From: Thalia democratica
Lineage: Eukaryota
Assembly (NCBI GenBank): GCA_965202585.1
Contig: OZ241828.1
Span: forward strand, 70,432,001-70,496,000
DNA length: 64,000 nucleotides
Reading direction: 5' to 3'
Both the position numbers and the translations under genes were made by a program. Numbering within the stretch: the first letter of the stretch is position 1; each line of letters begins with the position of its first letter. Positions 1,080-63,357 of this stretch are shown in pieces. Under the pieces are notes generated by a model. It was not told the DNA's origin. It was given only the letters and a program-made list of their open reading frames with translations, and did no database searches.

Positions 1080-4000
1080 TAATGTCTAATAACCTACAAA
1101 CAAAATTTTAGGAACCTACAAACTTTGGGTATAAAAAGGTACTAACCAAGATTAAGACCGAATAATTTATACAGTTGTAAGGTACTTTTTAACTTAGTAC
1201 AACTATATTTAATTGCTTTGTTTATAAATGTGTATTGCTAAATTATTTAATTAATAAAAAAGTTTTAAAGAAAAACTAAATTGAAAACAACAGCTTTATG
1301 TTCAAACGATAAATTACCCACATATATTACCTAGCGAAAAAAACTCTAAATATAATATTGATATTAAGTTTTTACCAAATGTCGTTTCTAATAACCATTA
1401 AAAAAAAATTAAACCATGCAAAAACGTTTTTTTCAAACTTTTTAAGAAATTTTTTAAACTATTTTTTTATGATTTAAAATCAAAAAGTTAACTAATGTTT
1501 CAGTTGAACACCAAAAATTTATATAACTATTAAAGGATCTAATCGCATTTGTATAAATTTAATCCTAATGTGAAAAAACTAGCTACTCAAAATATTTAAA
1601 AACTCAATTTTCCTAGATACTTATAAAATCGAGTCTTTGCGTATTGCTGTAAATAATACGAGCTATTTTATCTATTTATGTATATTTTTTCTTTTTACTA
1701 GGAGTTTCAGTGTCTAGATCAGCCGAATTTCTTTTTGTAAATTTTTCTTCTTTATTTATGTTTTCACTGAGTGCTTGAAGTACGAGTTCTCTAGTTGCGT
1801 ACTGAAAAATAAAGAAGATTTTTTATAAAAAAAAAAATGAAACATGAACTATAATATAAAACAAAAACTTTATATAACCTAAAAGTATCTTAATGCTTTA
1901 TAAATACGTTACATAGGAAAATTTAGTGTTTTTAAATTGGTAACTCACTATAGTATCAATTTTCTAGCTAAAAAAATAATAAAAAAGAATACTATAGTTA
2001 TGAATACTAATACTATTGTTTACTAATAACAAGTGGTAAAAGATAATTTTATATTTAGAGATAAACTAAAATGTTAGAAATTAGACATAAAAGTCAGTTT
2101 TTAAAAGTTTTGATATTACTTTTACTGTTTTTTAAATTTCAATATTTGTTACTTTTGAGGAAAACTATATTATTAGAATTAAACTTTTGTTTTTCTTTTT
2201 GATTTCTTCAAGTTGTTACTAGTAATTCGTCACAAAAGAATTCTCGGTAGTTATGTTTCTTGGTAAAACTACTCAATGAAGGGAAAACAAGCAGTTTTAA
2301 ACCTCTAGCTACTTTACATTAATTGTAACTTATTTTATAATAAAATTTTTCGCTATTTTTGAAATCAGACACGTTTTTGTTTTGTCTTAAGGATTTTAAT
2401 AAAAAAATATTATTGTGTTTGCATTAACTTGAATGCATTAAGGTTTGTAACTTTCTGGTACATTCTCTTTTTTAATAAAAAAACAAATCACTTCTTAATA
2501 AACAATCAATAAATTTTGAAACTATCGGTTTAACTTTATGCTAGGTTACATTACATATAAAAGACAAGAGTTAATAGTTCAAAGTAAACTAACTTCGGCA
2601 AAGTTAACGCTAGAAAACTCTAACTTCAATGCATGTTGAAAGTCATAAATTTCCTTCGTTCCTCGCAAATCTTTGATTATTATTTGCTCATCTTCAACAA
2701 TGTTCTTTACGCTCTCATCGTTGTTTAAAACAAGTACATAGATAGTCTGAAAAAAAAAATAATTATTTTTAATAAAAACAAAAAATTCATAACTTTAACA
2801 CTGATTGATCAGTAGAATTAAGGTTAAATTTTTAGTAGAATAGATTTTTGTTTAGAAAATAGCTTAGAAAATTTTTAAATGAATAGTTTTAACTTCTAAG
2901 CTATTTATTTTAAATTTTTCAATAACTAACTTCTTTAGCTTTATATATGTTGTTACGACAATGTAACACTGATTTAACTTGATAATAAAAATTAAGTTTA
3001 AAAATAATTTTAACTATTAGTTTCTTATATGTAAAATTAATTGATTTATATAGTATATTTTAGCCACAGATATCCATTAAATTAACAATATAAAAAAAAC
3101 CTCTGTCATCCAGTTTTCATCAGCTTTCATTTTATTAACGGTGAAATCTTTTTTTAAATTCACTTCATAAGACTGACGCTTTTTTTTTGTTTTCTCTTTG
3201 AGCTTCTTATAAAACTCGGTTAAAGGGGATCCAATGTGAAATGGCATATTTTTTGCTTCCTTTTTTTTTTTTATAAATTCCGTCATTGTAAATTCTGATA
3301 CAATTATTTCTTCATCCTGTTATAAATTAATGCTTTATTTACTTAAAATTAATGTAATATTCACATAATGTAGTTTTAAACTTCTTAAAAAAATGTTTAT
3401 TATTAAAATTAGACTATTTAGAAACAATTTATATTACTATAATTATTTTACTTATTATGTATATATCTATAGTTTAAATCAAAATAAACACAGTTTAAAT
3501 TTACTTTTGTATGTATATCTTTTTTAGGTCTGATTTGAAAATATTTCCAACTTCAGCCATATCTAATTAAAAAGTACTAAAAGTTTCTTAGTTGTATTTA
3601 TTTCTAAATAAGCATGCTGAACTATTAAAGATAAATAGGGTAAAAGTTAGAAGTTTAGGCTTTGATATAATTTTTAAACACATGATGTTTTACAATCTCT
3701 ATATTCAGATCGGGGAATTTATAATAAAATTACAAAACATTCAGTTGCACAAAAGTTAAAGCTTTAAGTTAAAGAAAGTTTATTTTTCCAGCAGTCCATT
3801 CTAACTTTTGTACATTATTAATTATACTTTAACACTATTTGGTAAGTAAAACTTAGCAGTAGATAAAAAAAAATATTTAGGAATACACTTGTGTTAACAC
3901 ATAAAAAAAATTATCTTTTTAAACATAGATTATATTCATTTAAACTGAAAAGTGGGCTTCTATTTAACCAAAAAACATTAAACCTACAAACAGGATATCA

Positions 4001-7000
4001 GTAATCTTTTTTAGTGGAAATATACATTACAATTTATATCTTATGTTGGAATATTTTTCAGTTGTTTTAGTACTTTAAAGTATGTTGGTTTTAAAATTAA
4101 AAAAATTTCATTACAAATACGTTTGATAATAAAAATTTAATATACTATTGTCACTTTGTTAAAATACTGTTTAGTAGGTTCACAAATTATTACTGTTTCT
4201 ACCAAAACATAGTATAAAAATAGATAAAAGTGTGTTTTATAAAGTTAGGCTTCATAATAGTTTTGCTCTTGATACCTTAAACTGTATTCAAGTTGATTGC
4301 GACTCAATAATTGAAAGTTTTTTTTTTAAACCCAGGTCTTAAGACCAACTATGATCAGCGCTTCTTTTTGTTGATTAACAGACAATGATATAACGAAAAT
4401 TAAAACTCTAAATTAAAGCAGCAAAGTAATTACCTTTGAGTCTTGTATTAGTTTATCATACCAGTTCTTCAGTCTGTCATGTCTTGTATGCTTATTATTC
4501 GATGTGTTAAACTTACTTTTTGGTTTTATTCTAAAGCAGTAATCTTTCTCTGAAGCCTGACTCCAAATGACTATGGAATTGTATCTGTTAAAAATATAAA
4601 CAGAAGCTAATTACATCATGCATAGGATTGATGTAGTGGGGATTGATTTGGGAAACAATTATTATCTTTACATGTTAACTTTTAGAAATAATTCAGTTAC
4701 TTAATCATTATAGTTTACTGTACAATATTTTTTTTGTACTTAAAAAATGTATTAAAAACAAACATCATAACTACTGACCCAGCATTTTTGTAATACATCA
4801 TAAAACTCTTTATGATTTCGTAGAACAAAGTAGTTCTTTCAGTCGAAGTTTTTTCTACACTTGATCCTCTGTAATATTTCACCGAATCCAAAAATGAAAG
4901 ATAAATTGAGTTTTTTATGTTTTTATGTCCTTCGTTGTACAGCTATAAGTATAAAGTGCGTGTTAAGAAAATTCAAACAAAATTACGTTATGAAGTTAAA
5001 AAAAATTTAATCTAAAAAACAGTTTTAAGATTTTGACCATTTGATGCTAGCTTTGTTTAATTATCTAAAATATCGTTTATAAAAAGTATTATGAGAACTT
5101 TTGCTTTAATTTATTTTATTCTTAATTCGATAAAATAAAACATACCAAGACATTTTGAATACTAAAAAAATCTAATAGTTTTTATTAATATTATAATTGC
5201 TAAATTAATCTAAAAAAATCTATGGTGTTTGTCATGTGCTAGTTAACTTATGATTGTTTATACAAAAATATATTCTTAAATTTTTACGAGCTAACAACCT
5301 CTGCTTGGAAAATAAAAAAGCATATTTCTTTTTCATCAATTTTCTGGAAAACTGCAAATACCAGCCTGGTAAAGTGAATGTCTGCTTTTTCATAACCAAG
5401 GCTGCAATATACAACAGTTTTAGTCTAAATAGGTACTATTATGTTTTAAATACTGGTTTAATATAATACTATAAGCTTTTTTGTTAAAGTATTTAATATT
5501 AAAAGAGCAAAAATTAGATTGCAGTAGATTTTGTTTTAAGGATTTACTATCAACCATAAAAGCTATCTTTTCAAAATTTTTGATAATAAAAAATAAAACA
5601 TTTTGGATATAGAAATTAAGTTAATCTTCAAAAAAAAAAAAATTGAAAAAAAAACTTAAAAAAACTATTAGATTAACTATTATTTAAAAAGCCATAAAAG
5701 TTAGTTAAGTATTGGTAATATTTTTACACGTCTAGAATTAATAATATTTTGATTTTTGGTATAACAAATATAGAATGAAAAAATTACTGTTTCATTAGGT
5801 GTTTGCAGCCTAAGTCGTATTTTATCTTTTCTTTGTTTAGAATTCTTACAAAAAGTTGCCCTTCGACTCCATTTTCTTTTTGTAATTCATTTATTTTCCT
5901 TTCTATGGTCTTGGTCAATTCATTTTGTCGTAAATTTTCAGCTGATGGAGCCGTTTCTTTTGAACATTCTTTACAAACAAATCTAAACAAATTTAATTAA
6001 ATGCAAACATCTTGTAGTTTAGTTTAAGAAGTTTTGAGGTTTATAAAATTAATTAAAAAATATAGACTTAAAGGATTGATAACAGTTCCTAGCTAGATAA
6101 TCTTAAATTGTTATTTGTGAACGCCCTATGATTTAGTACAGAGGACTACAAACTGCTGTCTATAAAGGGTTAAGAAGCAACCCCTGAGTAATTTTTGAAG
6201 GTCACACTAGATTTTTTCAGATCTTAAACATATGTAAAAAACAGTCTCAGGTGTAATTTACGAGATTTTTAAAACTTAGGTACTTTTAGCAGCTGTACTA
6301 AATACTATGAAGCAAAAAGTGAAAAATACGTCATAGTTGTAATTTACAAGAAGGTGATTAAAACCGCAACTGTGGTCAGCTAACACCAGATGTCTGCCGA
6401 CTTCTAATACTGATATCACAAAGAAACTTCATTAGAATTTCTGACTACTAATGTAGTTGAGTATTTTTTTCAAATTTGAGCTTTAATAATATTGTAAAAG
6501 TACCATTTCAAAAACTTTAAAGTTCAAATGTTTATTGTTCTAAACTTTCTATTATAAACTAATGCAATTTAAATTTATCAAATAAATTTAATGTTTAGAA
6601 AAAAAGAATATAAATGAACATTTACTTTTCATTTTCCGTGTACCCACAAATAGTGTGAAATTGTTTTTTGCATTGAGTGCATTTTTTAGTAGGCACTTCA
6701 ATTAGCTTGTTGTTTACTTTTTCCATAGGTTCAGCTTTTTTACTATCTTTACTTTTTGAACTGTTTATATAGTTAAAAAGATCAGTTGTGTGTACTTTAA
6801 AACTTCTAAGCTCTTAAATATTTACCAAACCTTTACTTTTAGTTTATAATTTAATGGATTTTTAAATTTAATCTTAAAATTTGGTATGAACTAATTCATT
6901 AACAAATATTTAGATATCTTTTTTTTATGTCTTTTTAAAATAACCTAGTCTAACCTTCTTCTTTTAATACTTAAAGCCGTCTTTTTTCCACATTCTTTAC

Positions 7001-8700
7001 AATATGCTTTATTTTTGAGTTCGTAATAACTTTCGTCGACATTAATGCCTCCCTTGCAGTTTTTGTTGCTACATTTCAGCCAGCTTTTGGAGTAAAACAA
7101 CTGTAATAAAAAAAATTAAAGAATTAAACCAAATGGTTCGTAACTAATAAGTATTTTTTGTGAAAAGACGACAAATCAATTGTCATTAAAAAAGACAAGT
7201 TTATTTATACTTTAAAAATTTGTAAATGTATAGAGCAAAACACTTACTCACTAAACTAAAAATTATAGTTTGTATAATAAACAGTCTTACTTTCTTTTTG
7301 CAGCAGAAGTTAACTGTTTCTTCAGATGACATTTAAGTATTTTTTAACCTTAAAATTTGTTATAATAACAATATTTTAAGATAGCTATATGGCTGGTTAA
7401 AATCAAGGATATTTATTTTTTTAGTTAAAATTGTTAAGCTGTCTTTTTGTCATATTAAGTTAAAACTATTGATAAATAAAGAAATATGTTTTATTTATCT
7501 TAAAAAGAGTTGATAAAAGTTAGATAACTTTTTTAAATGACTATATAAAAAATTAACAATGAATAAAAACTAAGAATGATAGTACATTAATACTTTCTGT
7601 TAATAGTATTTTACAAAATGATTTCGTTTTAAAGTAAAAAAATTCAAAAAAAAAAGTTAATTGGAAATCATAAATGAATTTATAATAGTTAAGCTTAAAA
7701 AAAACATTATTATTCTATTACAGCAATTGAATTGAAAAATTATAAACTGTTTTGATAATTTAGGTAAAAAAACTTCGTTAGATTTTGTCTATTCTTATTA
7801 CAAGAAATTTTTAATACTAAAAATAAGCGATTTAAATTACTGCTCTTAGTTTAACCCGATCGTCGCCTTAGGCGTTTATGATAAAAATAATATGCCCTGA
7901 AGCGACTTTTATAAAAAAACTTACATATTATTATATACACACTGTATAAAACTATTTCAAGGATTATCCAGCTTAGTAAAAATGTTGTTTTATAAAATAA
8001 AAAAAAACATTAAAAAATTAAGCCATTTGATAAAAATAATAGTCAATTTTTTTTAAATTAAATTAATCAATTAACAAGAAATACTCTACTAGTCTAATTG
8101 TTTAAATAATAAGAGTTTTGAGGTTTTAAGAAGTTTTTATTTATAAAACATACCTAGGCTCAAGATATTTAAAATAATCTTTTTGAGAAACAAAGGCTTT
8201 ACTTATACTATTTCTAATTTTAATGTAAAAAACGTGTTTTTTTAATACATATGCAACGAAACAATAATACAAAGGTAATATAAAAGTAATTGTATTATTT
8301 ATCTATAAATAAACTATATTTTCTTTTTAGTTTAAAACTTTTAACAAATGTATAATAAAACATTACTCTTAAAGTTAACACTTAATATATTAGGTAAACT
8401 TTTTATACTTTATTAACGAAATCAACTTGTACTGTAAAATAGACTAACTTGTACTTTAATGAATAATTGTGTTAAATCTAAAAACATCTATTGATTTGGT
8501 CATATGATAATTCTATTTCTTAAAGATATTCAAGTGACCATATCTCTAAAAGTAATATTTAAGTCTTATATATATCTACCAGTATTTTTTTATTATGATT
8601 GCAAATTTTTAAAATATTTTTAATAATTTTTTAGATTATTAAAATCTATAAAAATTAACTATATTATGAAACTAATATAACCATAAAAAAGTAGCTTTTA
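1080..8700. repeat. Segmental duplication unit A (paralogous to about 51670-58500, same orientation)
   Basis: Exons, many intron blocks, the 3' flank (gaacctacaaa...gaccga...ttgtaagg) and the 5' flank (tcgtcgccttagg...tatgccctgaag; taatgaataattgtg) align by eye with the second block. Boundaries are approximate. Confidence 0.85.
1676..7332 (-). CDS. Minimal p300/CBP-like (KAT11) lysine acetyltransferase, copy A: RING-PHD-HAT only, 10 exons, about 476 aa
   Basis: Hand-spliced GT-AG exons with matching phases: 7332-7291, 7100-6955, 6760-6626, 5982-5788, 5401-5299, 4942-4779, 4584-4434, 3316-3101, 2746-2594, 1801-1676 (1431 nt, no internal stop). Motifs are collinear with the p300 core: FCCKKK~YCCGRK; KCTQCKKQFHTIC~ECTECGRKMHQIC; FVCKEC~FVCDGC; FQKIDEKEICFF~FEEIDGVDLCFF; IYLSFLDSVKYY~VYISYLDSVHFF; IWSQ~IWAC; RLKNWYDKLI~RLQEWYKKML; MPFHIG~LPYFEG; LEFSSVNFAEYAT~LEFSSLRRAQWST. 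Confidence 0.9.
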
Positions 8701-9388
8701 GATATTAATAAGACCAACATATGTTTTTTTTCCAAATATGTATAGTTATTTGTAATATGGTCTCTTAAAAATTTTTTTAAGAATTTAGTTCGTTGTGCAC
8801 TCAAATTTAATATGTTTATAAAAAAAAAATCAACTTTAATTTTTATGTGAGAATTTTTTTGAATATTTATAACACACAGCGTGAACTAGAAAAAGTATTT
8901 AAGTTGTTTTGTTCGAGAGTTCAATAAATTTCCATATATGGAGTTATTGTAAATCTAGCTGTTGTATAATCTATCTGATTTCTGAAATTGATTGTATCTA
9001 GTCTTAGAAATTAAATAGCAAAACATATAGGGTTTAGGATCGCAAAGTTTAATAAAGTCTCATTTGTAACATCCCATATTTAAAAAAACACAGTGAATCT
9101 TGTTTGGATTTGAAATAACAGATATGGTTCAAGTATGAAAAATAAGAATTTTTGTGATTAAAAAAAAGTAACAAATGACTATTTCTAATTTTTAAAACCA
9201 GATTGAAAAATAAATAAAGTTTGAAAAAGGTTAATGCAAATTTTATAATATGACTTTAGAAAACCTTGACAAAAAGATCTAGTTGAATTTTAATAAAATG
9301 AAAGAATAACTTTTATACTTTATTACTTCTACCAAAGCATTACCTAAATAAGAAATTACAACTAGAAGATTAACAGTTCTATAAAAAC

Positions 9389-9819
9389 CAGGGTTGCCAA
9401 TCAATTAAATTTTTTTTTGCAGATTTTCCAAATTTCTTTTAAAAGTCAAAAATACAAACTTTTTGGTCTATTTTTAGTTTAAAGTTTTGTTTAAGGTAAG
9501 AAAATGTGTTGAAAAATATAAAAAAAATTGAAAAGATACTGTAAAGCTATTTTAAAAATGCTCTTACTAAAAAAAATTTTTATGATAAAAAATTTTTGTT
9601 TATATGATAGATTTTTTGAGTAAAATCAAAATTTTACTACTTATAGTGTGAAAATTGTTAAAATTCCAGGATTTTCCAGGCTTTTTAATGATTTTTGCTA
9701 AAATTACAGATTTTCCAGGTTTTTTCAAAATTTCTTAAATTTCAGGTTTTTCGAGGGTTTTTTTGCCTGAATTCTAAAATTCCAGGCTTTCCATGTTTCC
9801 AGGTAAAGTGGCAACCCTG
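9389..9819. mobile_element. hAT-like MITE with 11-bp TIR CAGGGTTGCCA
   Basis: cagggttgcca at 9389 and tggcaaccctg ending at 9819, with subterminal ttccagg repeats. No clean 8-bp TSD. Confidence 0.7.
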
Positions 9820-19971: not shown

Positions 19972-22900
19972 TTAAAACCCTAAAGTAGACGAACGTGGCT
20001 TCAGGTGTTGGTGCTGAGCTGAACCATTCTGCATTGAGGTTTGCAGTTGACTTGACTGGATTGGACCACCAGGAGTTTGCAATGGTTGATTTGGATTCGT
20101 GTTGTGATGGTGTTGTGGTAAGTAGCGTGTACTCATTGCATGGTTTTGTTGAACATTAAAACTTTGTGGAGTCGGCTGATATTTGTAGCTTAGTGCGCTT
20201 TGTTGAGCAATTAAGTTTGTCTGCTGCTGAGTTGTTGTGTTAAGGGGTAAGTGAGAATTTTGTTGAAGTGTATGAAAGTTCTGCACACCAGATTGAACCT
20301 GACTTGTTACAATCACGTTGCTTTGTTGTGATTGTGTAGGTTGAACTTGGTTGCTGTAAACAAAACCTTGTTTTGATGTTACATTTACACTTTGGTCGAA
20401 CCTATTGTTTTGCGGTGGCTGATAAATTCTCTGAGTTGCTTGATGTTGACTTTGTTGGTTGTTTTGGTTGTAACCTGGATACTGCATTCGTGGCTGCTGT
20501 AATCTATAAGAGTTAGTAATGTTTTTGTTAGTAGTTGTAGCAATATTTGGGCCTGATGCATAACTTTGCGTTGCCACTGTCGCGTAGGTTTGAGACATTG
20601 CTGGATTAAAATTTAGTCCTGATTGTTGCAATCCAGTTGGACTTGTGACGTGTTGGTTAGATGCATATCCATTTTGGTTCGTTATATAACCTGCGTTTGG
20701 TATTTGTTGCGGCTGGTATTTCGTCTGAGCTGATTGAGGTTGCCCTTGTTGGTAGTTATGGTTGTAGCGTGGTTGCTGTACTTTGTAAGAGTTCGGAATA
20801 GCTCGATTGATATTTAGGCTAGACGCGTAACTATGAGTTGCTTGTGACTGATAGCTTTGAGACACTGCTGGCTTTGAGCGTTGTGCCAATTGCTGCATTC
20901 CAGCTGGGTTTGTGACGTATTGGTTAGGTGTGTTTGGCGTATAACCAATGCGCTGGGTTTGTTGGTAATTAACCTGAGCTGATTGATATTGACCTTGCTG
21001 GTTATTTTGGTTAACTACTGGGCTTACATTACGTGGTTGTATTCCAAAAGGTCTTGGAAGTTGAACCTGTTGTACGCTTCTTTGGTACAAAACTTGAGCT
21101 CGGTTACCACCCCCTTGCATACCACTTGATGGTTGAACTGTTCGCATACCACTTTTGGAAGGTTTTACTGTGTCTTTTAGTGTTGGTGGAATTGGATAAC
21201 TTTGTTGGTTGCTAATTGATAAGTTTTGTGAGTTTCCAGTTGCTGAAGTATTTTGCTGGTTTACTCCACTGCTTGTTCCCGAGTTGAAACTGAAAAAAAT
21301 CATATGATTTGATATTTTGTTGATTTTTGTCTGACTTTGCTCGTAAACTTTACAGTAGTTTTATTAACTTTTACTTTATAAAATTGAAGATAAAAATAAC
21401 TACTCATAGTTTTGATCTTTGTGGATCTTATTTAAAAAACCTTTAAAAACCAAATTATATTAAAACCGTAATATTTCAAACATTTCTTCTATAAACTTTA
21501 TTTAAAATATGTAGAACTAAAATGTTTCAAAACGTTATATTATTTGTGATTATATTGCAAAATGATTAGTATTTTTTTAATTACTGTTATTTTAAACATG
21601 TCTTATAAGAACAAAATTTTTAAAAACAGCCCTGACATATTTTCTAGACATTGGTTTTAATTTTCCTATAGACAATCGTAATAAATTTATATAGGACTTA
21701 AATTAAACAATAAAAATACTAGATATTTTATTCGAAAATAAACAACTAAAATAACAAAGAAATTAGCAACTAAATATTTAAACATATATTATCTGACAGA
21801 AGATGCAAAAACTAGTTATCAGAAATTAAACATGACCACATGAATTTTACGTATAATGAACGTGTCAAAAAACCTTTGAAATTAAATAAATATATAAAAG
21901 AATTATTTTCTTATTAATAAAATTTATAACTACTTAAACAACACTACCTGATATTTTTGTCATTTTTTTCTTTAGTTCTTTGCCTCTTGTTTTTGAACCA
22001 ATTTGATATTTGTTTCCTTGTCATATTAGTTTTTTTCACTAACATTTCTTTTTGTTCTTTTGTTGGTGCATTTCCCTTATTTTCAAGGAAGTCCATCAAC
22101 ACCCTTTTGTCCTTTATCTATAAAAAGATATGTTGAGTTATTTAAATATTTAATATCCTAACTATTACTTACTTATCAGTAAAAACGTTAGTAAAAATAT
22201 GTAAACATACAGTTAGTAAAGTATAAACCTAAATTTTATTATAAAATATTTTTTTTTTTAAAGTCTAGAACTATTTATTAGTTAAACGCGTAGGCGGTCT
22301 GACTCTGTATCCAGTGTCATTCCGGCAGCTCCTGTGACAATGATGTTATTTATTCCCTGGTTTTGTGCTAGGAGAGTTTCACTCCAGCTTTCCATGTTTT
22401 TCGCGAAGACACAAAACGGAATGCAGCAGAAACTGGTGATAATTCAAAATCTATACATTAAGAGGATGTGGGTCAGGGGTCTTATTCGTTATAGATATTT
22501 TTAATTCCACTGAACAACCACGACCTGCCTTAAGCTAATCAGGCATCAGCCAACAATGTGTTGTTCCGCCATAGTTTATCTTCATTATTGGGTGAATGGG
22601 AAAAGTTTAAAGTGAAAAGGAAATTAAAAGTTGTTCACCTGACAAACATATACAAAAATAGAGACCAACTCTCAAACTAGTAAGCTGGAAAGAGCGGACC
22701 CCGAAGTCATAAGTGATGCAAGAAAAACTGATTCTATAAACAACAAACTTATTCGTTTAAGGTTGATATTGCAGCTCTTCAAGAAACGCACCTTTCTTAT
22801 CAAGGCTCAGCTAACTAAAAAAAATATACATTTTGTTGGTACTGTAGGTCTATTTTTGAACCTAGGAAAGGTGTAAGGTTTGCTGTCAAGAACATACTTT

Positions 22901-31649: not shown

Positions 31650-34422
31650 TATTAAGTACAAAAATCGATCTACCATCTAAGTAATTAAACAACTAAAATT
31701 AACGAAAACAACAGTTAATTGACTATAAAATACTTCAAAATGTGTTATATTTTAAAAGGAGCTTTTTCATATGTCGACAAGACGATATGAATTCACTCCT
31801 TCTACTCAAACGACCTTCCTTTTTAAACGCATACATAACGGCTGTTGATTCTTTTAAGCACAGCCTACAAACTGGGTTGTTACCATCTGCTCTTGGCTGT
31901 GCTCTTTTTATCACTTCCCAAGTTAATTTAAAATTAATTTTTTTGCGCTTAAGGCCGCAAACATACTTCGAAAGCTCAGTTTCATTTCGTATACACCACC
32001 TTTAAAGGATTTTTTATGGTTAGCATACCGAAATCTGAGTTTAGTGGAGCATAAACCGATGTAGAACTTCTTTCTATGGTCAGAGTTAACTGTTGCCTTG
32101 TAAATAATGTTCTCTGAGTGGCAATTGCCCCCCTTCAAATTATATTTACAGCCACCGGCGCAATTACACTGATTTTTGATTGAATTACTTTTGTTTAAAA
32201 TCCTTTGATTATGTGACTTGATTAATCTCTCCAAATTCGCCATACATGAATAACTGATTCGCATATTATGTTTGTTAAACATCTTTGATAATGGGTTATT
32301 TTTGTTGAAATGTTTTTTTTACTAGATTTATAAATTCTCTGCCGATGTTTGTTTTAACTGAATTACAGAATGGGGGATTATACCAAATTATATTTCGCTT
32401 TCTTTTACTTTTATTGGTCGTTTTGTTTTTTTTTTTCCGTTGTTTCAAAATTAAGTTAATCATTGTAACCACATTTTTTCATTATTAGTTCGTAATCTTG
32501 CTTTGTCTTTAAAAAGTTTTCTTCGTTGCTTGATCTTTTATTTAAGCGTTGATTAATTATTTTTGATATTTGGTTTATAATATTTTTTGGGTGGCTAGAG
32601 CATTTATTTATATACATAATTTTTGCGTTTTGCTTTTTATAAGGCATATAGGAGAGATCATACAAGTTGAGCTTCACATCCAGGTAGTCAGTCGTCAACA
32701 TTGGTGATTCAATAGTGGCTCGTAACCCCATGGACTTGAAGAAGGCGTGCGTTTGTTTTTTAGCCTTTCAACTATAAAGCCAGAAGAATTTGCAGTACAG
32801 CTAGACCATCGTCCCTGTACAACCCAACTCTTTCTAAACCAAAGATATTTTTCAACCCATTTAACAAAAAAAGGCCTACTAATTCACATAACTCTGCACC
32901 CATTAACGATCCCTGCGCTACATCAAAAAGAGAGCTGGTGTTATTTGCTCTCTTCTTTTGCCACAGGTTTCCTTGTTCATAAAGTATTGATTTACATGCG
33001 TTTTTTATTAGACTTAAGTCTTCAGTAGGTACGCTAGTATAAATGCCAGCAAATTTTAGTGATTTTATTACCAATTCTTCGCTGATAGAAGGATAAAAAT
33101 CAACTACATCAAACTTAAAAAAGCTGTACGCTTGTTTTTCCAAACCAGTGAACCAATTTAAGACTTGGTCTGTATCAGTCCACTGCATAAGTTTAGATTT
33201 TAAACGCACAGCTTTATTAATGCAGTCAATCTTAACCTTAACTATGCGACCTACATCGGACTTAGAGTATTAATTAATCTACATTTGGGATGTTTCAAAA
33301 AGTTATCTTTATGGTCTTTGACCGTTATGTATGCGTTTTTTAAAGGCAATTTTTTGATCCTATCATGTATTTTTAAGTTTTTAGTTAAATTTTCAGCCTC
33401 TACATTAATATCACTTAAAGTTTTATAAGTACATTTTTCGTAATCTTTAGTAATATTGTATTTTAATAATTTTTTACAGTCACTTACTGAAATTTCGTAA
33501 AAATTAGAAGTTTTATCAGAAGGCACAATCAAATTTTTGCATTTCTTATGTCCTGCACAATCTTTGAAAGTTCATGTTGGAAACGGCTTCTACTTGTTCT
33601 GAACTCCACGTCTTGCTTCATTTTGATTAGGTCTTCTTCAAATGCCTGTAGATGTTGTATTGGCTTAGGTGTGCGTGTTGTTTTGAACCCGTATGTTTCG
33701 TGTTCTTCTGCAGCCACTTGATCTTTTTCTTCGAAGAACTTTGCTTTCCACCGCAACCGTCTTACTAGGTGTTGAGTCTTCTGAATTAGAGCTTCCTTAT
33801 GCACATCTTGTTTAGCACACGGAATGTACTTAGTCGAATGCTTGATATCAAACTTTTTAAAATCTGACATTTTTTATAAAAGTGTTTTTGTTTACTGTGC
33901 TCGACAAAAATTTGGAGCATAAATATAAAATAAGGTTAATATTCAAACTTGAACACCTTCTACTGAGCCCACTTGAAGGGCTTTTAGATAATTTATTGAA
34001 ATGACGATTTTAAAAATTCTGGAACATATGTTTCATAAAGACTAAAAAGATTGTCTCTAATCTTCAGCCAGTTCAAATTTAAATAAAAAGCACTTTGGTA
34101 AACAATGATGTAAAAGTTTACAAAAAAACAAAAACAATATGACGTAAGAATTGAACATTGTACATTACAAACATTCAGTACAAAAATCAATCTACCATCT
34201 AACTAATCAACTAAAATAAACGAAAACAACAGTTAATTGACTATAAAATACTTCAAAATTTGTTATATTTTTAACGCATACATAACGGCTGTTGATTCTT
34301 TTAAGCACAGCCTACAAACAGGGTTGTTACCATCTGCTATTGGCTGTGTTTTTTTTATCACCTCCCAAGTTAATTTAAAATCAATGTTTTTGCGCTCAAG
34401 GCCGCAAACATACTTCGAAAGC
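31650..34422 (-). mobile_element. Penelope-like retroelement family A: near full-length, frameshifted RT + GIY-YIG with upstream pseudo-LTR
   Basis: ORF fragments 33870-33529, 33532-33251, 33209-32772 (FFKFDVVDFYPSI, QGSLMGAELCELVGL, YRDDGL), 32731-32456 and 32282-31735 (IYKATV...FYIGLCST.FRFRY.NHKKSF). A tandem partial 3' end at 34422-33980 precedes the ORF, the typical PLE pLTR layout. Confidence 0.93.
34018..34073 (-). ncRNA. Type I hammerhead ribozyme (PLE-A')
   Basis: CTGG-CTGAAGA-T[TAGAGAC..GTCTTTA]T-GAAA-CATATG-TT-CCAG. Confidence 0.75.
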
Positions 34423-35340: not shown

Positions 35341-36415
35341 AAATTCAAAACACAAAGCACTGTACTAAACAAAGATACAAAAGTTATGCAAAAAAACAAA
35401 AAACAGTATGACGTAATATTGTACATTACAAATATTCAGTACAAAAATCGATCTACCTTCTAAATAATTAAACAACTAAAATTAACGAAAACAACAGTTA
35501 ATTGACTATAAAATGCTTCAAAATTTGTTGTGTTTTAAAAGAAGCTTTTTTATATGTCGACAAGACGATATAAATTCGCTTCGCTTATTTAAACAACCTT
35601 CCTTTTTTAACGCATACATAACGGCTGTTGATTCTTTTAAGCACAGCCTACAAAACAGGAATTTCAACAAAAATAACCCATTATCAAGGATATTTAACAA
35701 ACATAATATGCGAATCAGTTATTCATGTATGGCGAATTTGGAGAGATTAATCAAGTCACATAATCAAAGGATTTTAAACAAAAGTAATTCAATCAAAAAT
35801 CAGTGTAATTGCGCCGGTGGCTGTAAATACAATTTGAAGGGGGGCAATTGCCGGTCAGAGAACATTATTTACAAGGCAACAGTTAACTCTGACCTTGAAA
35901 AGAAGTTCTACATCGGCCTATGCTCCACTCAATTCAGATTTCGGTATGCCAACCATAAAAAATCCTTTAAAGGTGGTGTATACGAAAATAAAACTGAGCT
36001 TTCGAAGTATGTTTGCGGCCTTAGGCGCAAAAACATTGATTTTAAATTAACTTGGGAGGTGATAAAAAGAGCACAGCCAATAGCAGATGGTAACAACCCT
36101 GTTTGTAGGCTGTCCTTAAAAGAATCAACAGCCGTTATGTATGCGTTAAAAAAGGAAGGTTGTTTAAATAAGCGAAGCGAATTTATATCGTCTTGTCGAC
36201 ATATAAAAAAGCTTATTTTAAAACACAACAAATTTTGAAGCATTTTATAGTCAATTAACTGTTGTTTTCGTTAATTTTAGTTGTTTAATTAGTTAGAAGG
36301 TAGATCGATTTTTGTACTGAATATTTGTAATGTACAATATTACGTCATACTGTTTTTTGTTTTTTTGCATAACTTTTGTATCTTTGTTTAGTACAGTGCT
36401 TTGTATTTTGAATTT

Positions 36416-36950: not shown

Positions 36951-38520
36951 ACAGTTTATTATAATAGTGAACAAAAATTTCGATTTTAGAATTTTTTATA
37001 ACAATTATGACGTAGTAATGGTACAGTTTATTGTACGATTAGTTGAATTTGAAATATGCTGTGAATGTTATTCTATGCTTTTTAGGAAAGTTTAAAAAGG
37101 TTATTTTGGAAAAATGTTTTAAGCTATTAGAAAAAAATTTGTTTAGGCTGTTGGGAAAAATGTTATAAAATGCTATAAAATCAAATCAAAGAAGCAAATC
37201 ACCGAGATCAGCTGAAAACACCGCTAAATATTTAAATAAATTATTCAAACAAAACGGCTTTAAAATAACAATAGAATCCGGATTATTCCAAACAGACTTC
37301 TTAGATGTATCCTTCAACATATCAAACTCAAGTTACCAACCATACAACAAACCAAACTCACCAATTTTATACGTAAACTACAACTCCAACCACCCCCGAC
37401 AAATACTAAAACAACTACCCGAAACAATAAACAGAAGACTAATAAAACTATTTAATAACGAAGAATCCTTCAACAATGTAAAAAATGAATACCAAAAGGC
37501 ATTAAATTCGGCCAATTATAAAAACACCTTAAAATACGATAAGACTACTTTACCAGAAAGAAATAAAAAACAAAGAAAAAGAGACATAATATATTTCAAC
37601 CCACCATTTAGTCTAAATATAAGTTCCAAAATAGGCAAACAATTCTTAAACCTGATTACTACATCATTTGACGAAAACCACCCATTTAATAAAATATTCA
37701 ACCGAAACACAATCAAAATATCTTACAGTTGCACAAAAAATTTCAGAAGTAAAATAATAGCTCACAACAACAAAATATTAAACAAAAGCAATATAGACGA
37801 TAAAAGCACCATAAAAGATAAACTTTGTAATTGCCGTAAAGAACCTTGCCCTTTAAATAACGAATGCCTAGTGTCAAATATAATTTATAAAGCAACAGTA
37901 ACATCAAATAAAACAACAAAGCAGTATATAGGGTCGACAGGAAATACTTTTAAACAAAGATACAGAAACCACAAACCATCATTCAACAATATTAACAAAA
38001 GACACACAACAGAACTAGCGAATTACATATGGAACTTAAAAGATAACAATACAGACTACAAAATTAAATGGGAAATATTAAACAGGACAAAATTAAAATT
38101 CAATACTAAATTCGGCTGCAAACTTTGTAACTTAGAAAAAATAGAAATCGAAAAATCAGATAAGAACGTAACACTAAACAAGAAAAGCGAAAGACAAAAC
38201 ATATGCATCCATTATCAAAAATACTTTTTTAACAAAATTAAAACCAACTAAATATTAAAACAAAATAAAATCGAAGCGGCAAACACGAGTATTTTATAGC
38301 ATTTTATAACATTTTTCCCAACAGCCTAAACAAATTTTTTCTAATAGCTTAAAACATTTTTCCAAAATAACCTTTTTAAACTTTCCTAAAAAGCATAGAA
38401 TAACATTCACAGCGTATTTCAAATTCAACTAATCGTACAATAAACTGTACCATTACTACGTCATAATTATTATAAAAAATTCTAAAATCGAAATTTTTGT
38501 TCACTATTATAATAAACTGT

Positions 38521-51200: not shown

Positions 51201-52243
51201 CAGTTCGTGTTTAATTGCGTTTTAAACGTTCCTGTAAACAATTCAACTACCCATATAGAAAATTTTTTTTTTTTCGGCAAACATTTGTATTTTAAGCCAT
51301 AAATAGTATAAAAGCAACGCAATAAATTTTCCGACAGTTGAAAATATTAAAAATTAATTTTCAAAAGAGATTAGGTGAAACATCCTTTCATTGTTTATTT
51401 TTGGCTAGAGTATAAATAAAAGGAAAGCTCAAACTAAATTGAAGTAAAAATTTTGTAAATGAGTACTTAACAACTTTTAAGAATATTAAAACAGTATTTT
51501 AAAGCTTAATTACTTTTTTTCGGAAAATAATGAATTTAAAAAGTGAACTCTGAATTAATGTAAACTAAACATTATAATTTCTAATGCAAAAATAGTTTTC
51601 TATAGCTAGTTGTTTATGCAAACTTTTAAACAGAAAGTTATTTCTAGATATGTAAATCTTATGCAAACTGTATTTTGTTCTTTTCTTGTTTTATAGAACC
51701 TACAAAACTTGTATTTTAAAAGGTTCTAATCAAAATTGAGACCGATGAATTTGTACAATTGTAAGGTGTTTTGTAATTTAGTACTTAAACATGTTTAATT
51801 AATTTGTATATTAGTGTTTAGTTTTAAATCTTTAATAAGAAAACAATTATAATGTAATGTAGTTTTTAAATTACAACGATAAACAATCAATACATATTAT
51901 TTAGCGCTTACAATTCTAAATTAATCTTTATAGTAAGTTCTTACAAAATTTCATACATAATAACCGCTTAATAAAAAAAAACCATGCAACAATGGTTTTG
52001 TTAATCTCCTTAAGTAATATTTTAAACACATAATATTTTTTAGAATCTAAAATCAAAAATTTAACTAATGTTTATACAGAACACCATAAATTTATATAGT
52101 TTGTTAAAGATCCAATAATATTTATATAAATTTATTCTAATGTGAAAAAACTAGCTACTCAGAGTATTTTTAAAAATAAAGTTTTCTAAAGTTCCACACA
52201 ACTGAGATTTGCTAAAACTCATACGAAGTTTTACTATCTATTT

Positions 52244-55200
52244 CTAAGTTTTTTTCTTTTTCCTTGGAGTTTCAGTGTCTAGAATGGCCGAATTTCTTTT
52301 TGTAAGTTTGTTTTCTTCATTTTTGTTTGCACTGAGTGCTTGAAGTACGAGTTCTCTAGTTGCGTACTGAAAATAAAGAAGATATTTTATAAAAATAAGA
52401 ATAAAACGTAAGTTACACTATAAAACAAATTTCTTATAATTTTAAAGTATATTAGTGCTCTATAAATAAGTTACATAGCATTAGGAATATCAAATTTTTG
52501 AAAATTGGTAGCTTACAATATCATCAAGTTTCAAATAACAAAAAAAAAATATTATTGTTATGAATACTAACATCAATGATCACTAAAAATAATAGTTAAA
52601 GATGATAATTGATTATAGATCAAGTAAAATGTAAAAACAAAAACATAAAAATCGTTGTTTACAAGTCTTAATATTACATATACTGTTCTTGATTTTTAAC
52701 ACTTTTTACTTTTTAGGATAACTAAAATACTAGAGCCAAACTATTTTTTTCAAGTGGTTAGATGTAGTTTGTCATAAAACAATTGTTTGTAGTAATGTTT
52801 CATGTTAAAACTACTCAAAAAATGAAAAAAAATGTTAAAAAGACATCTATTTGTTTTACATTAATTACTATTTATTTTATTAACTTTTTTTAAGTTCAAG
52901 AACTTAAATATAGACACGTTATTATTTTGTAACCATAGATTATAATTTTTTGTTACATTTAATATAAAACAAAAACAAGTGTTAATAGTTCAAAATAAAC
53001 TAACTTCGGCAAACGTAAAGGTAGAAAATTCTAACTTCGATTCATGTTGAAAGTCATAAATTTCTGTCGTTCCTCGCAATCCTTCGATTATTACTTGCTC
53101 GTCTTCAACAGTATTTTTTACGCTGTCTTCGTTGTTCAAAACAAGTACATAGATATTCTGAAAAGTAAAAACTAAATATTTTTAATGAAAACAAAAGGTT
53201 CATAACTTTAAAACTGATTGATCAGTATAACTATGGTTAATTTTAGTAGAATAGATATTTGTTTTGAAATTGCTTAAATAATTATTAGATGGATAGTTTC
53301 TAACTTCTAAGCTTTTTATATTAAGTTTTTCAATAACTATCTTCTTTAGCGTTAATTATGTTGTTACGACAATGTAACACTGATTTAACTTGAAAATAAT
53401 AACTAAGTGCAAAAATTATATACACTGTACCTTTTTTATCAAAATAAAAAAATTTTAAAGTACAACTTATCCACGTAATAGATATCCCTTTTATTACCAA
53501 TATAAAAAACATAAAAACAAACCTCGGACATCCAGTCATCATTAGCTTTCATTTTAGCATGGGTAAAATCTTTTTTTAAATTCACTTTATAAATCTCACT
53601 CCTTTCTTCTGTTTTTCTTTTTAGTTCTTCATAAAACTTGATTAAAGGGGATCCAATGTGAAAAGGCATATCTTTTACTTCCATGTCTTCTACAAAATCT
53701 GTCATTTTAGATTGTGACACAATTATTTTTTCGTCCTGTTATACGTTAATGATTTTTTTTTACTTAAATTTTATGTAATATTTACATAATACAGTTTTAA
53801 ATTCTTTAAAAAATTTATCAATAAAATTACAATAACTATAAACAATTTGTTTTACTAAAGTTATTCCACTTATTAAGTGTATTTTTTATAGCTTTAAATG
53901 ATAAAAAACTGTACCCAAGTAGTGTGCGACTCGACGATCAAAAAGTTTTCTAACAATAAGATTCTAAGACCAACTATTTTGAGCACTTCTTTTTGTCGTC
54001 TAACACACAATAACATGTTAAAAATTAAAATTATAGATAAAATTACCTTTGAATCTTTTATTAGTTTATCATACCAGTCCTTCAGTCTATCATGTCTTGT
54101 TTGTTTATTAGTGTTAAACTTACTATGTGGCTTTATTCTAAAGCAGTAATCTTTCTCTGAAGTCTGACTCCAAATGACTATGGAATTGTATCTGTAAAAA
54201 GTATGAACAAAAGCTAGTTACGTCATGCATACAATTGTTGTAGTGGGAATTGATTCGGGAAATAATTATTATCTTTATAGGTAAACTTTTAGAAAACTTT
54301 TATGTTTTAGTAAATGGTATACTGTACGATATTTATTTAAAGTTTATATTCGAAAAATGTATTAAGCACAAGTATCATAACTACTAACCCATTATTCTTG
54401 TAGTATCTCATAAAACTCTTTATAATTTCGTGGAACAAAGTAGTTCTTTCAGTAGATGTTTTTTCTACATTTGATCCTCTGTAATATTTCACCGAATCCA
54501 AAAATGAAAGATAAATTGAGTTTTTTATGTTTTTAAGTCCTTCGTTGTACAGCTAAAAGTATAAGTGTGTGTTAAGAAATTTCAAAGAAAGTTACTTTAT
54601 GGAGTTAAACAAAACTTTGAATGTTAATCTTAAAAACAGCTTTAAGTTTTTGAACATTTGATATTAGCTTTATTTCATACACTAAAATGTCATTCAAATA
54701 AAATATGATGTAAATTTATGCATTATTTTAACTTTAGTTTTTATTCGATAGAATAAAGCATATCAAGAAGTTTTTGGTTTAAACATATGAAAATGTAAAT
54801 TTATAGTTTTTTTATGTGCTGATTAACTTATGATTGTTTATACAAAAATATATTCTTAAAGTATAATAAGCTAACCTCTGCTTGGAAAATAAAAAAGCAT
54901 ATTTCTGTTTCATCAATTTTCTGGAAAACTGCAAATACCAGCCTGGTAAAGTGAATGTCTGCTTTTTCATAACCAAGGCTGCAATATACAACAAATTTAG
55001 TCTAAGTAGGTACTATTGTTTTAAAAACTGGTTAATATAATACGATAAACTTTTGTGTCAAAGTATTTAAGATTTAAAAAGCAAAAATTATAATGCAGTA
55101 GTTTCTTTTTAAACATTTCCTAGCAACTGTAAAAGTTTTACTTTTAATATTGTAAATAATAAAAAAGAAAATATTTTGAATTTAGAATTTTGATTTATAT

Positions 55201-56857
55201 TCCAAAAAAATAAATTGAAAGAAAATAATTAGGAAATCTACAACACTAATTTCTTTAAAAACATTTTGTAAGTTAGTTAACTACGGCAATATTTATACTG
55301 GTCTAGATTAATAATATTATTATCTTTGGTATATCTAATTTTAATGAAAAATTTACTGTTTCATTAGGTGTTTGCAGCCTAAGTCGTATTTAATCTTTTC
55401 TTTGTTTAGAATTCTTACAAACAGTTGCCCTTTTACTCCATTTTCTTTTTGTAATTTATTTATTTTACTTTCTATGGTCATAGTCAATTCATTTTGTTGC
55501 AACTTCTCAGCAGATGGAGAGGTTTCTTTTGAACATTCTTTGCAAACAAATCTAAACGAAGTTAATTAAATGCACACATCTTGTAGTTCATTCAAATACA
55601 TTTTGAGGTTTATAAAATTAACTGCAAAATATAGACTTAAAGTATTGACTAGTGAACATTTGTAAATTAAATTACAATAAGTTGATAGTTTTGAATGCCC
55701 TATGATATACAGAATACTGCGAACTGCTGTTTATAGTGGATTAAGAAGCAACATCTACTAACTTTTGAAGAACTGGGTTTTTTTTGGATCTACAACACAA
55801 GTAGAATACAGTCTCGGGTGTAATTTACGGGATTTTCGGGAAAATACATCATAGTAAAAATTTACAAGAAGGTGATTAAAACCACAACTGTGGTCAGCTA
55901 ACATTAGATGCCAATCGACCCCTAATACTATATTATGATGAAGCTTATCTAAAATTTACAATTACTAATTGAGTTATGTATCTTAACAAAATTAAGCATT
56001 TATAATATAATAAAAGTACGATTTTAAAAACTTTAAAGTTTAAATGTTTATTGCTCAAAACTTATACAAAAACTATAAAAATAAAATCATTTTACAACTA
56101 AAGTTAATGTTTAGAAATAAAGTAATAAGAATAGAAATTTACTTCTTATTTTCTGTATATCCACAAACAATGTGAAATTGTTTTTTGCATTGAGTGCAAT
56201 TTTTGATAGGCACTTCAATTTGCTTGTTGTTTACTTTTTCCTGAACTTCAACTTTTTTACTATCGTCACTTTTTGAACTGTTTATGTGGTTAAAAAGATC
56301 AGTTATGTGTACTTTGAAATTTCTAGGAAATGTTCTTTGATACTTACTAAAAATTTATTTTAATTAATAATTGAGTCTTAAAGTTTTAAATGAACTAACT
56401 GGTTTACAAATAGTTAGATAACTTTTGATGTCTTTTAAAAATAAGTAAATTGGTCTAACCTTCTTCTTTTAATACTTAAAGACGTCATTTTTCTACATTC
56501 TACGCAAAAGATATTTGGATTTTTTGCTTTATCTTTGATTTCGTAATATTTGGCGTCAACATCAATGCCTTTCTTGCAGTTTTTGTTGCTGCATTTTAGC
56601 CAGCTTTTGGAATACAACAACTGTAATAAATAGTTTATAGAAATAAACTGAATGTTTTGTAACTATTAAGTATGTTTGTCAAAAAAAATAAACCAATTAT
56701 CACTAACATAGACATGTTTTCTACAAAGCCTGTAAACTTTAAAAATTATAAATGAATAGAGTAAAAACTTACTTACTAAATTAAAAGTTCTAAAATAAAT
56801 AATAAACAATCTTACTTTCTTTTTGCAGCAAAAGTGAACTGTATCTTCAGATGACAT
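52244..56857 (-). CDS. Minimal p300/CBP-like (KAT11) lysine acetyltransferase, copy B: 10 exons, about 477 aa
   Basis: Same exon phases as copy A: 56857-56816, 56620-56460, 56277-56143, 55551-55357, 54978-54876, 54552-54389, 54191-54047, 53735-53523, 53157-53005, 52366-52244 (1434 nt, no internal stop). All indels against A are multiples of 3 nt. FLDSV, ERT, IWSQ and WYDKL are retained. Confidence 0.9.
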
Positions 56858-57811
56858 TTAAATAGCTTCTAACCTTAAAATAATTTTATTAGTAAGTGAA
56901 ATATTTTGAAATAGTAGACGGCCCGCTAAAGTACATATATTTAAATTTATTTCAGTTAAAATTATTAATCCGTCCAATGTTATTCTAAATTGTATATTAA
57001 TAAATTTATTAAGAAGTATGTTTAGTTATATAAAAATATATAATTTCAAATTGATAAACTTTAAACAAACATTTAAAATGAGTTTATAAAAATATGCCAT
57101 AAATAAAAACTAGAAACAACAGTACATAAACATTTTCTGTTCATAGTTGTTTACAAAAGTATTATGTTTAAAGGTAACAAAATTTGAAAAAACATAATTG
57201 AAAAACAGTACAAAAATTTATAATAGTCATGTTTTTTGTAGAAAAATTTTTGTAGAACTTTAATGTTTTTTAAAGCAATTGAAAAATTATAAATATTTTG
57301 ATACTTTAGCTGTAAAAAACTAAGTTAGGCTTTGTCTAATTTTAGTAGAAGAATTTTTAATACTAAAAATAAACTAATAACAGCTTAAATTACAGTTCTT
57401 AGTTTAATCAAATCGTCGCCTTAGGCTAAAAAAATTATAATTATGCCCTGAAGTTAATATCATATTCACATTTTATGCAACTATTTCACAGATTATCACA
57501 CATAGTAAAAAACTAATTAATAAATTTAAAACCACAAAAAAGTTAATCCATTTGATAAAAATTAAAGCAACTTTTTAAAGATTAAATTATATCTAAACGC
57601 TCTCCACTGCTTGAATACCTAGATTTTTAAGGATTAAAAAGTTTATACTTGAAAATCATACTTAGGTTCAAGATATTTGATTTTTTTAAGTTTCCAAATA
57701 CATTTTTTAAATACAAAGGTTTTACTTAAATCATATTTTATTTTTACCTAAAAAATTATCTTAGTAAAGCATATGCAACAAGTACTAATATACAAGTTAA
57801 ATGAAAGTTAT

Positions 57812-61825: not shown

Positions 61826-63357
61826 AAATTCAAAATACAAAGCACTGTACTAAACAAAGATACAAAAGTTATGCAAAAAAACAAAAAACAGTATGACGTA
61901 ATATTGTACATTACAAATATTCAGTACAAAAATCGATTTACCTTCTAACTAATTAAACAACTAAAATTTACGAAAACAACAGTTAATTGACTATAAAATG
62001 CTTCAAAATTTGTTGTGTTTTAAAAGAAACTTTTTTATATGTCGACAAGACGATATAAATTCGCTTCGCTTATTTAAACAACCTTCCTTTTTTAACGCAT
62101 ACATAACGGCTGTTGATTCTTTTAAGCACAGCCTACAAACAGGGTTGTTACCATCTGCTATTGGCTGTGCTCTTTTTATCACCTCCCAAGTTAATTTAAA
62201 ATCAATGTTTTTGCGCTTAAGGCCGCAAACATACTTCGAAAGCTCAGTTTCATTTTCGTATACACCACCTTTAAAGGATTTTTTATGGTTGGCATACCGA
62301 AATCTGAATTGAGTGGAGCATAGGCCGATGTAGAACTTCTTTTCAAGGTCAGAGTTAACTGTTGCCTTGTAAATAATGTTCTCTGACCGGCAATTGCCCC
62401 CCTTCAAATTGTATTTACAGCCACCGGCGCAATTACACTGATTTTTGATTGAATTACTTTTGTTTAAAATCCTTTGATTATGTGACTTGATTAATCTCTT
62501 CAAATTCGCCATACATGAATAACTGATTCGCATATTATGTTTGTTAAATATCTTTGATAATGGGTTATTTTTGTTGAAATGTTTTTTTACTAGATTTATA
62601 AATTCTCTGCCGATGTTTGTTTTAACTGAAGTACAGAATGGGGGATTATACCAAATTATATTTCGCTTTCTTTTACTTTTATTGGTCGTTTTGTTTTTTT
62701 GCTCCGTTGTTTCAAAACTAAGTTTATCATTGTAACCGCATTTTTTCATTATTAGTTCGTGGCTGTAAATACAATTTGAAGGGGGGCAATTGCCGGTCAG
62801 AGAACATTATTTACAAGGCAACAGTTAACTCTGACCTTGAAAAGAAGTTCTACATCGGCCTATGCTCCACTCAATTCAGATTTCGGTATGCCAACCATAA
62901 AAAATCCTTTAAAGGTGGTGTATACGAAAATGAAACTGAGCTTTCGAAGTATGTTTGCGGCCTTAAGCGCAAAAACATTGATTTTAAATTAACTTGGGAG
63001 GTGATAAAAAGAGCACAGCCAATAGCAGATGGTAACAACCCTGTTTGTAGGCTGTGCTTAAAAGAATCAACAGCCGTTATGTATGCGTTAAAAAAGGAAG
63101 GTTGTTTAAATAAGCGAAGCGAATTTATATCGTCTTGTCGACATATAAAAAAGTTTCTTTTAAAACACAACAAATTTCGAAGCATTTTATAGTCAATTAA
63201 CTGTTGTTTTCGTAAATTTTAGTTGTTTAATTAGTTAGAAGGTAAATCGATTTTTGTACTGAATATTTGTAATGTACAATATTACGTCATACTGTTTTTT
63301 GTTTTTTTGCATAACTTTTGTATCTTTGTTTAGTACAGTGCTTTGTATTTTGAATTT

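Follow-up and report, generated by a model that had tools for sequence, protein, structure and literature searches.

A two-copy, CBP-derived salp gene that encodes the RING-PHD-HAT core alone

In a 64,000-nucleotide stretch of the genome of the salp Thalia democratica (GenBank assembly GCA_965202585.1, contig OZ241828.1, positions 70,432,001 to 70,496,000 of the forward strand; this whole 64-kb stretch, with a G+C content of about 24%, is referred to below as the window), we find a real gene, derived from a CBP gene and maintained by selection, that encodes only the RING, PHD and histone acetyltransferase (HAT) core of the CBP/p300 coactivators and that is present in two copies, A and B. We call its product mini-p300. 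Canonical metazoan CBP/p300 proteins are about 2,400 amino acids long and carry TAZ1, KIX, bromodomain, RING, PHD, HAT, ZZ, TAZ2 and NCBD. The account that we favour, and regard as probable, is that of a lineage-specific, truncated CBP/p300 paralogue that arose as a partial duplicate, was duplicated a second time, has been under selection and still acetylates its substrates by a p300-type route.

The gene model of copy A, rebuilt by hand and by script from the minus strand (7332..1676; Table 1), exactly reproduces the ten phase-compatible exons and the roughly 476 residues proposed in a preliminary description of this DNA. It comprises 476 codons, 1,431 coding bases and a TAA stop codon at 1678-1676, with GT-AG borders in nine of nine introns (190-1117 bp) and compatible phases throughout. 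A curated alignment with proteins of bromodomain-RING-PHD-HAT architecture sets the start nine residues ahead of the Cys-Cys motif that follows the bromodomain, and the aligned region extends from residue 6, just past the bromodomain of these proteins, to where they run on into the ZZ finger. The stop codon of both copies lies about 30 residues beyond the last HAT helix, at the point at which canonical proteins enter ZZ, and in both the triplet immediately 5' of the ATG is TAA, an in-frame stop. The boundaries given earlier, from the post-bromodomain Cys-Cys to just after the last HAT helix, are those seen in this alignment, apart from the tail of some 30 residues. The RING and PHD ligands named in the preliminary description are also in place: mini-p300 has a counterpart in each of the 12 conserved zinc-ligand columns (C1163, C1164, C1177, C1183, C1201, C1204, C1247, C1250, H1255, C1258, C1272 and C1275 in p300 numbering), with one ligand, C29, two residues off the C1183 column. 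After its RING part, exon 2 encodes a basic patch, KRRSSKSK. Another candidate exon at about 3480-3540 ('MAEVGNIFKSDLKK') was rejected: its frame clashes with the exon 7 donor, it lies inside an insertion specific to copy A, and the phases of exons 7 and 8 already fit each other in A as well as in B.

Searching the window with the copy A model (tblastn) uncovers the paralogue, copy B, at 56857..52244 on the minus strand, with ten exons, the same phases and splice sites as copy A, and a product of 477 amino acids. The two copies are 81% identical in protein, 89% in coding DNA and about 82% in introns. The description of the gene as 'stand-alone' holds for this locus; the gene is not unique, given the paralogue 50 kb away. 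What was duplicated is a block that contains the mini-p300 gene alone, together with flanks of about 560 bp on its downstream side and about 960 bp on its upstream side (1-2.4 kb upstream with faint traces included).

Both copies have been held open by purifying selection since their split, as follows from their substitution pattern, their frame-preserving indels, their indel density and the simulated loss of the open reading frame (ORF). Between A and B, synonymous divergence (dS) is 0.23 and nonsynonymous divergence (dN) 0.10, a dN/dS of 0.44 overall, with a significant synonymous excess (Fisher p=1e-5); the ratio is lowest over the HAT core (0.23) and highest in the stretch corresponding to the autoinhibitory loop of p300 (0.70), the fastest-evolving part. 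The lengths of the exon indels are all multiples of three (four of four; 3, 3, 6 and 15), compared with 11 of 53 in introns (P=0.002), and indels are sparser in exons (2.8 per kb) than in introns (12.3 per kb). The ORF survived in none of 20,000 simulations in which random substitution was set at 9% or 18% and base composition was intron-like.

Membership of the KAT11 family is best seen in the spliced protein. Queried exhaustively against 1.84 billion representative proteins, exon 6 returned four matches, among which the only true KAT11 protein is a HAT fragment of a plant CBP-type protein (HAC; P0004, E=3.9e-4); the other three (P0001-P0003) were set aside as tandem-repeat artefacts. From this seed we collected 119 PF08214 proteins, including the crystallised constructs of human p300 and CBP. 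With phmmer, the spliced protein scores up to 86-88 bits against PF08214 proteins and 64 bits against the crystallised human p300 HAT, in one alignment covering residues 121-443, and a custom profile built from 65 PF08214 proteins gives 124 and 127 bits for the two models, where none of 500 shuffled sequences exceeds 2.2 bits. These scores make the KAT11 membership of the predicted protein, as a matter of sequence, secure, in keeping with its earlier assignment as a KAT11 enzyme. The PHD-HAT part has as its best-scoring relative an ORF (P0094, 86 bits) in a 12.3-kb transcript-like contig (L001; Logan SRR33454306), which carries TAZ, bromodomain, RING, PHD-HAT and ZZ-TAZ in consecutive broken frames and so represents a full-length CBP.

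The origin of the gene is recorded in its introns. We mapped the introns of the CBP genes of an acorn worm (L003/P0062) and of the spider Uloborus (L004/P0096) by exact protein reconstruction, and found that, of the seven mini-p300 introns open to comparison, three (introns 3, 6 and 8) share both the alignment column and the phase of a canonical CBP intron (chance P ~2e-5). Intron 3 (phase 2, in the codon before F-V/T-C) matches a spider intron; intron 6 (phase 2, within the Gly codon that precedes ..IW) matches introns of both the spider and the acorn worm; and intron 8 (phase 0, before a VFFVIRL-type strand) matches an acorn-worm intron. Canonical introns of the same phase are found 3 codons away from intron 4 and 9 codons away from intron 7, and intron 5 has no canonical counterpart. 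Because introns 3, 6 and 8 match in position and phase, they establish that the predicted gene originated from an intron-bearing CBP gene by partial duplication at the DNA level; it is neither a retrocopy nor of foreign origin. The protein itself is similar to metazoan-type proteins from residue 6 through RING and PHD, and to plant HACs mostly in the HAT part only. The spider CBP-like gene also has an 89-bp GC-AG intron (L004 23269-23357), just before its 'RVYISYLDS' exon.

To compare active sites, p300 numbering was anchored on D1399 in two reference rows, an anchor that also reproduces R1410, W1436, T1357, E1505, C1247, H1255, C1275 and K1287 as well as the Y1467F mutation of one construct. 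Twenty residues are identical to p300 in both copies: Y1394, S1396, L1398, D1399, S1400, R1410, T1411, Y1424, Y1430, I1435, W1436, D1445, Y1446, F1448, P1452, K1456, R1462, L1463, W1466 and Y1467. Among them are all eight of the acetyl-CoA (acetyl-coenzyme A) contacts (L1398, D1399, S1400, R1410, T1411, K1456, R1462 and W1466), the catalytic tyrosine Y1467 (Y304 in copy A, Y307 in copy B) and the lysine-guiding tryptophan W1436 (W269 and W274). The motifs cited in the preliminary description all align to the p300 residues named there: FLDSV at D1399 (D226), ERT at R1410/T1411 (R243/T244), IWSQ at W1436 and NWYDKL at W1466/Y1467 (W303/Y304). Three further changes are conservative (Y1397F, Y1414F and Y1503F), and the autoinhibitory-loop stretch has shrunk from about 75 amino acids in p300 to about 35.

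We infer that mini-p300 would bind acetyl-CoA and acetylate lysines, because exactly the residues that serve these functions survive a very long branch, in a core with the lowest dN/dS of the protein. The partial duplication retained no more than the exons that encode the RING-interrupted PHD finger and the KAT11 HAT domain; very fast evolution followed, and then a second duplication, giving rise to A and B, 50 kb apart. Acetyl-CoA would be held through D226/S227, R243/T244, K293, R299 and W303, and the acetyl group passed to lysine by a p300-type hit-and-run mechanism in which Y304 would act as general acid and W269 would guide the lysine. The predicted protein cannot be recruited in the manner of p300: given that it has neither acetyl-lysine reader nor transcription-factor docking domains, any targeting would have to fall to the zinc fingers and basic patches. 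From the patches KRRSSKSK and KKKK (the latter C-terminal), a nuclear location is predicted. Its substrates and regulation would be expected to differ from those of p300, because the acidic pocket and the RING-HAT latch have been replaced.

These same replacements, together with several other observations, weigh against an acetylating paralogue. A series of residues that are near-invariant in the family are changed (H1434V, C1438Q, P1439A/T, P1440S/-, P1458T, F1504H, E1505I, D1507S and W1509L/-); loop L1 has lost its C-P-P start and P1458, positions conserved to 90% or more across the family set, and has gained a 6-residue insertion, with a second 6-residue insertion before R1410. The acidic pocket of p300 (T1357, E1505, D1625 and D1628), which is critical for peptide binding (PMC9843983), is represented by R185, I340, a gap or G, and K or T (E at D1628 under another gap placement). 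R1627 is replaced by T (K in copy A under another gap placement). In human p300, D1628R strongly lowers activity (PMC12547938) and R1627W is impairing (PMC9843983). The RING-HAT latch pair is lost as well: E1242, found in each of the 14 canonical rows, is V85 in copy A and V90 in copy B, and R1645 is N432 and T434, respectively. Disturbing either E1242 or R1645 raises the activity of p300, in line with the role of this pair as a RING-HAT latch (PMC12547938). Because pocket, R1627, parts of L1 and latch are replaced, even though the catalytic and CoA-binding residues are kept, the sequence makes catalytic activity of mini-p300 plausible and a p300-like specificity unlikely.

Other points on the same side concern how the gene is placed and recorded. 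Searched as single exons, the gene gives no HAT_KAT11 match in Pfam, where exons 2 and 3 have sub-threshold zinc-finger matches (for exon 2, IBR/half-RING at E=0.0017, below the cutoff), and exons 6 and 7 match no p300 chain among PDB sequences, so the homology is seen for the spliced protein only. A maximum-likelihood tree built from the PHD-HAT core places A and B together on a branch 2.7 substitutions per site long, and the composition of the pair is deviant; this placement is unreliable, and the tree was not used. No self, near-self or close relative of mini-p300 is present among the 1.84 billion representatives queried with exon 6, and a scan of JGI metagenomes with the A+B exon-6 alignment gave 427 pattern matches, none of them confirmed. 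The failure to find a transcript, an orthologue or an annotated protein is uninformative, as two intact control ORFs of the same window equally have no exact record in protein collections; the reading of such absence as a sign that the gene is not expressed was dropped for that reason.

The strongest competing reading is that of a regulator with no catalytic role: a real, selected gene whose product does not acetylate, and might instead bind CoA or acetyl-CoA, divert partners of the RING-PHD-HAT core as a decoy, or act on full-length CBP as a dominant negative. The changes in L1 and the substrate groove (C1438Q, P1439A/T, P1458T, F1504H, E1505I, D1507S and T1357R), the loss of D1625, R1627 and D1628, at two of which substitutions impair the human enzyme (D1628R, PMC12547938; R1627W, PMC9843983), and the very long branch of the A/B pair all fit such a protein, and Caenorhabditis elegans offers a precedent in cbp-2 and cbp-3, which are functional, truncated and non-catalytic CBP paralogues (PMC10320766). 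Set against this, every known CoA-contact and catalytic residue is kept in both copies, dN/dS reaches its minimum in exactly that core, and a pure scaffold would have no need of Y1467, W1436, D1399 and R1410, all of which have been retained over 2.7 substitutions per site. We consider a pseudoenzyme to be unlikely on balance, while giving it a real share of the probability.

The favoured paralogue would also be misread if it were only part of a longer gene, with hidden upstream exons (bromodomain, KIX and TAZ1) or downstream exons (ZZ and TAZ2) that would make its small size an artefact. Canonical queries (TAZ1-BRD, RING, ZZ-TAZ2 and others) found no bromodomain, TAZ, KIX or ZZ match by tblastn in the window, a weak test in that they matched exon 6 of A and B alone and missed the other true HAT exons, so that equally divergent bromodomain exons could escape; exon 1 moreover contains a weak ACAG. 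This candidate acceptor has no pyrimidine tract, however, and TAA abuts the ATG in both copies, which also end at the same place; beyond the coding region, similarity between A and B reaches only about 1-2.4 kb on the upstream side and about 560 bp on the downstream side; and the minus strand has no long open frames at 7333-9625 or 1-1675. With no such coding found in the window, a stop ahead of the ATG in each copy and a duplicated block that holds this gene alone, the RING-PHD-HAT-only architecture described at the outset stands, and a longer gene is very unlikely. About 20 bases 5' of the ATG, both copies share the sequence 'TTTTAAG/GTTA' (window 7333-7355 and 56858-56880); to see in it a putative trans-splice acceptor would be pure conjecture.

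Least probable of all, and also very unlikely, is that the 7-8 kb unit is mobile or a captured gene fragment and that the copies are two recent, decaying insertions: Penelope-like elements do lie nearby in the window, but the edges of the block bear no terminal inverted or direct repeats (AT-rich chance matches only), no transposase or reverse transcriptase lies within it, only two copies occur in the 64 kb, three of the gene's nine introns were inherited from CBP, and the signatures of purifying selection are clear.

A broader extension of the favoured reading is that salps possess a small family of free-standing, unlatched p300-type acetyltransferases with intact chemistry, independent of recruitment and acting on new substrates, which may have spread partly with transposons, for instance as an anti-silencing or chromatin-opening factor; we offer this as speculation that is rather unlikely to hold in full.

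The interval between the two copies contains a SIX homeobox gene together with a cluster of Penelope-like elements. ORFs that combine a Cys-rich segment with a GIY-YIG-like one after it ('NIIYKATV...YIG'), an arrangement that Penelope-like elements also have, are found at 31923-32282 (-), 35513-36238 (+), 37871-38251 (+), 62003-62749 (-) and 62776-63192 (+); about 5 kb separate one such ORF from copy B, on the upstream side of the latter. Over about 190 amino acids, the copies at 35.5 kb and 62 kb are near-identical, which suggests that this family may have been active recently. Just below the SIX gene is an intact 443-residue ORF (19972-21303, minus strand) that is extremely rich in Gln, Asn, Ser and Pro; an exact look-up of its product gave no match, and it could be a low-complexity terminal exon of SIX or of another gene.

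Table 1. Exons of mini-p300 copy A and associated features of the window (positions in the 64-kb window; residues of copy A).
Feature	Position	Strand	Content
Exon 1	7291..7332	-	Residues 1-14; ATG 7332-7330; C10/C11 = p300 C1163/C1164 (first PHD zinc ligands)
Exon 2	6955..7100	-	Residues 15-63; RING part: C24, C29, C48, C51 = p300 C1177, C1183 (shifted by 2 residues), C1201, C1204
Exon 3	6626..6760	-	Residues 63-108; PHD ligands C90, C93, H98, C101 = p300 C1247, C1250, H1255, C1258; V85 at latch residue E1242
Exon 4	5788..5982	-	Residues 108-173; last PHD pair C111/C114 = C1272/C1275, linker, first HAT strand QLFVRIL (p300 EVTVRVV)
Exon 5	5299..5401	-	Residues 173-207; HAT strands; R185 at substrate-pocket residue T1357
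Exon 6	4779..4942	-	Residues 208-262; best-conserved HAT core; Y221, S223, L225, D226, S227 = Y1394, S1396, L1398, D1399, S1400; 6-residue insertion; R243/T244 = R1410/T1411
Exon 7	4434..4584	-	Residues 262-312; W269 = W1436; loop L1 (CPP replaced, 6-residue insertion); K293, R299, W303, Y304 = K1456, R1462, W1466, catalytic Y1467
Exon 8	3101..3316	-	Residues 313-384; F338-H339-I340-G-S342 in place of Y1503-F1504-E1505-G-D1507; Lys-rich loop of about 35 amino acids
Exon 9	2594..2746	-	Residues 385-435; C-terminal HAT subdomain, conserved LEFSS motif; N432 at latch residue R1645
Exon 10	1676..1801	-	Residues 436-476 and TAA; last HAT helix ATRELVLQAL (= STMCMLVELH), short tail, C-terminal KKKK patch
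Block duplicated between A and B	A 1112..8290, B 51696-57811		Delimited by A/B similarity; faint traces to 9790/58045
A-only insertion in intron 7, about 789 bp	3490..4278		Length of intron 7: 1117 bp (A), 311 bp (B); the insertion contains a short open frame 'MAEVGNIFKSDLKK...' that does not share the frame of the neighbouring exons

The enzyme core of CBP/p300 is normally controlled by the bromodomain, the RING latch, the autoinhibitory loop and many docking domains. With the core of canonical CBP/p300 (KAT3A/KAT3B; p300 residues 1048-1664), mini-p300 shares a RING inside a PHD finger with matching zinc ligands, a KAT11 HAT domain in which the catalytic Tyr and Trp as well as the CoA contacts are the same, and three intron positions; the similarity scores are 64-88 bits. 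It differs from these proteins in its length of 476 amino acids, in having no bromodomain, TAZ1, KIX, ZZ, TAZ2 or NCBD, in the replacement of the acidic pocket, R1627 and the E1242-R1645 latch, in a loop of about 35 instead of about 75 amino acids, in the 6-residue insertions before R1410 and in L1, and in its extremely long branch. A selected version of 476 residues, devoid of reader, docking modules, latch pair and acidic pocket, amounts to a natural experiment on the HAT core alone; if active, it would show how substrate choice in the p300 fold can be rewired and would provide a compact natural acetyltransferase module.

Free-standing or bromodomain-free enzymes of this type exist elsewhere. 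Plant HACs (HAC1/5/12), one fragment of which was the match to exon 6, are KAT11 enzymes that are naturally without a bromodomain but, unlike mini-p300, they retain ZZ and TAZ and have a plain PHD (PF00628). The fungal Rtt109, of KAT11 fold, is a free-standing p300-fold acetyltransferase without reader or coactivator domains; it has no RING-PHD and needs histone chaperones. To our knowledge Rtt109 has no detectable sequence similarity to p300, whereas the salp protein is clearly CBP-derived by both sequence and introns.

In non-vertebrate chordates, CBP/p300 has been described as single-copy in a study of planarians (bioRxiv 10.1101/2020.09.08.287045), and we found no literature on a truncated p300/CBP gene of this kind in tunicates. 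The view that it does not belong to a described gene family agrees with this and with the lack of any close relative in the exon 6 search; mini-p300 is a new lineage-specific variant of the known CBP/p300 family. Its closest parallel in history is found in C. elegans, where cbp-2 and cbp-3 represent partial duplicates of cbp-1 located near each other, long held to be pseudogenes and yet functional (PMC10320766; bioRxiv 10.64898/2026.08.14.744963). Like the salp genes, they are lineage-specific partial CBP duplicates that lie close together, but in content they are a mirror image: cbp-2 and cbp-3 keep the N-terminal TAZ1 docking end, with or without KIX, and no HAT, whereas the salp genes keep the enzyme core only. 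Taken together, the two cases indicate that partial duplication of CBP can give rise to docking-only and enzyme-only offshoots alike.

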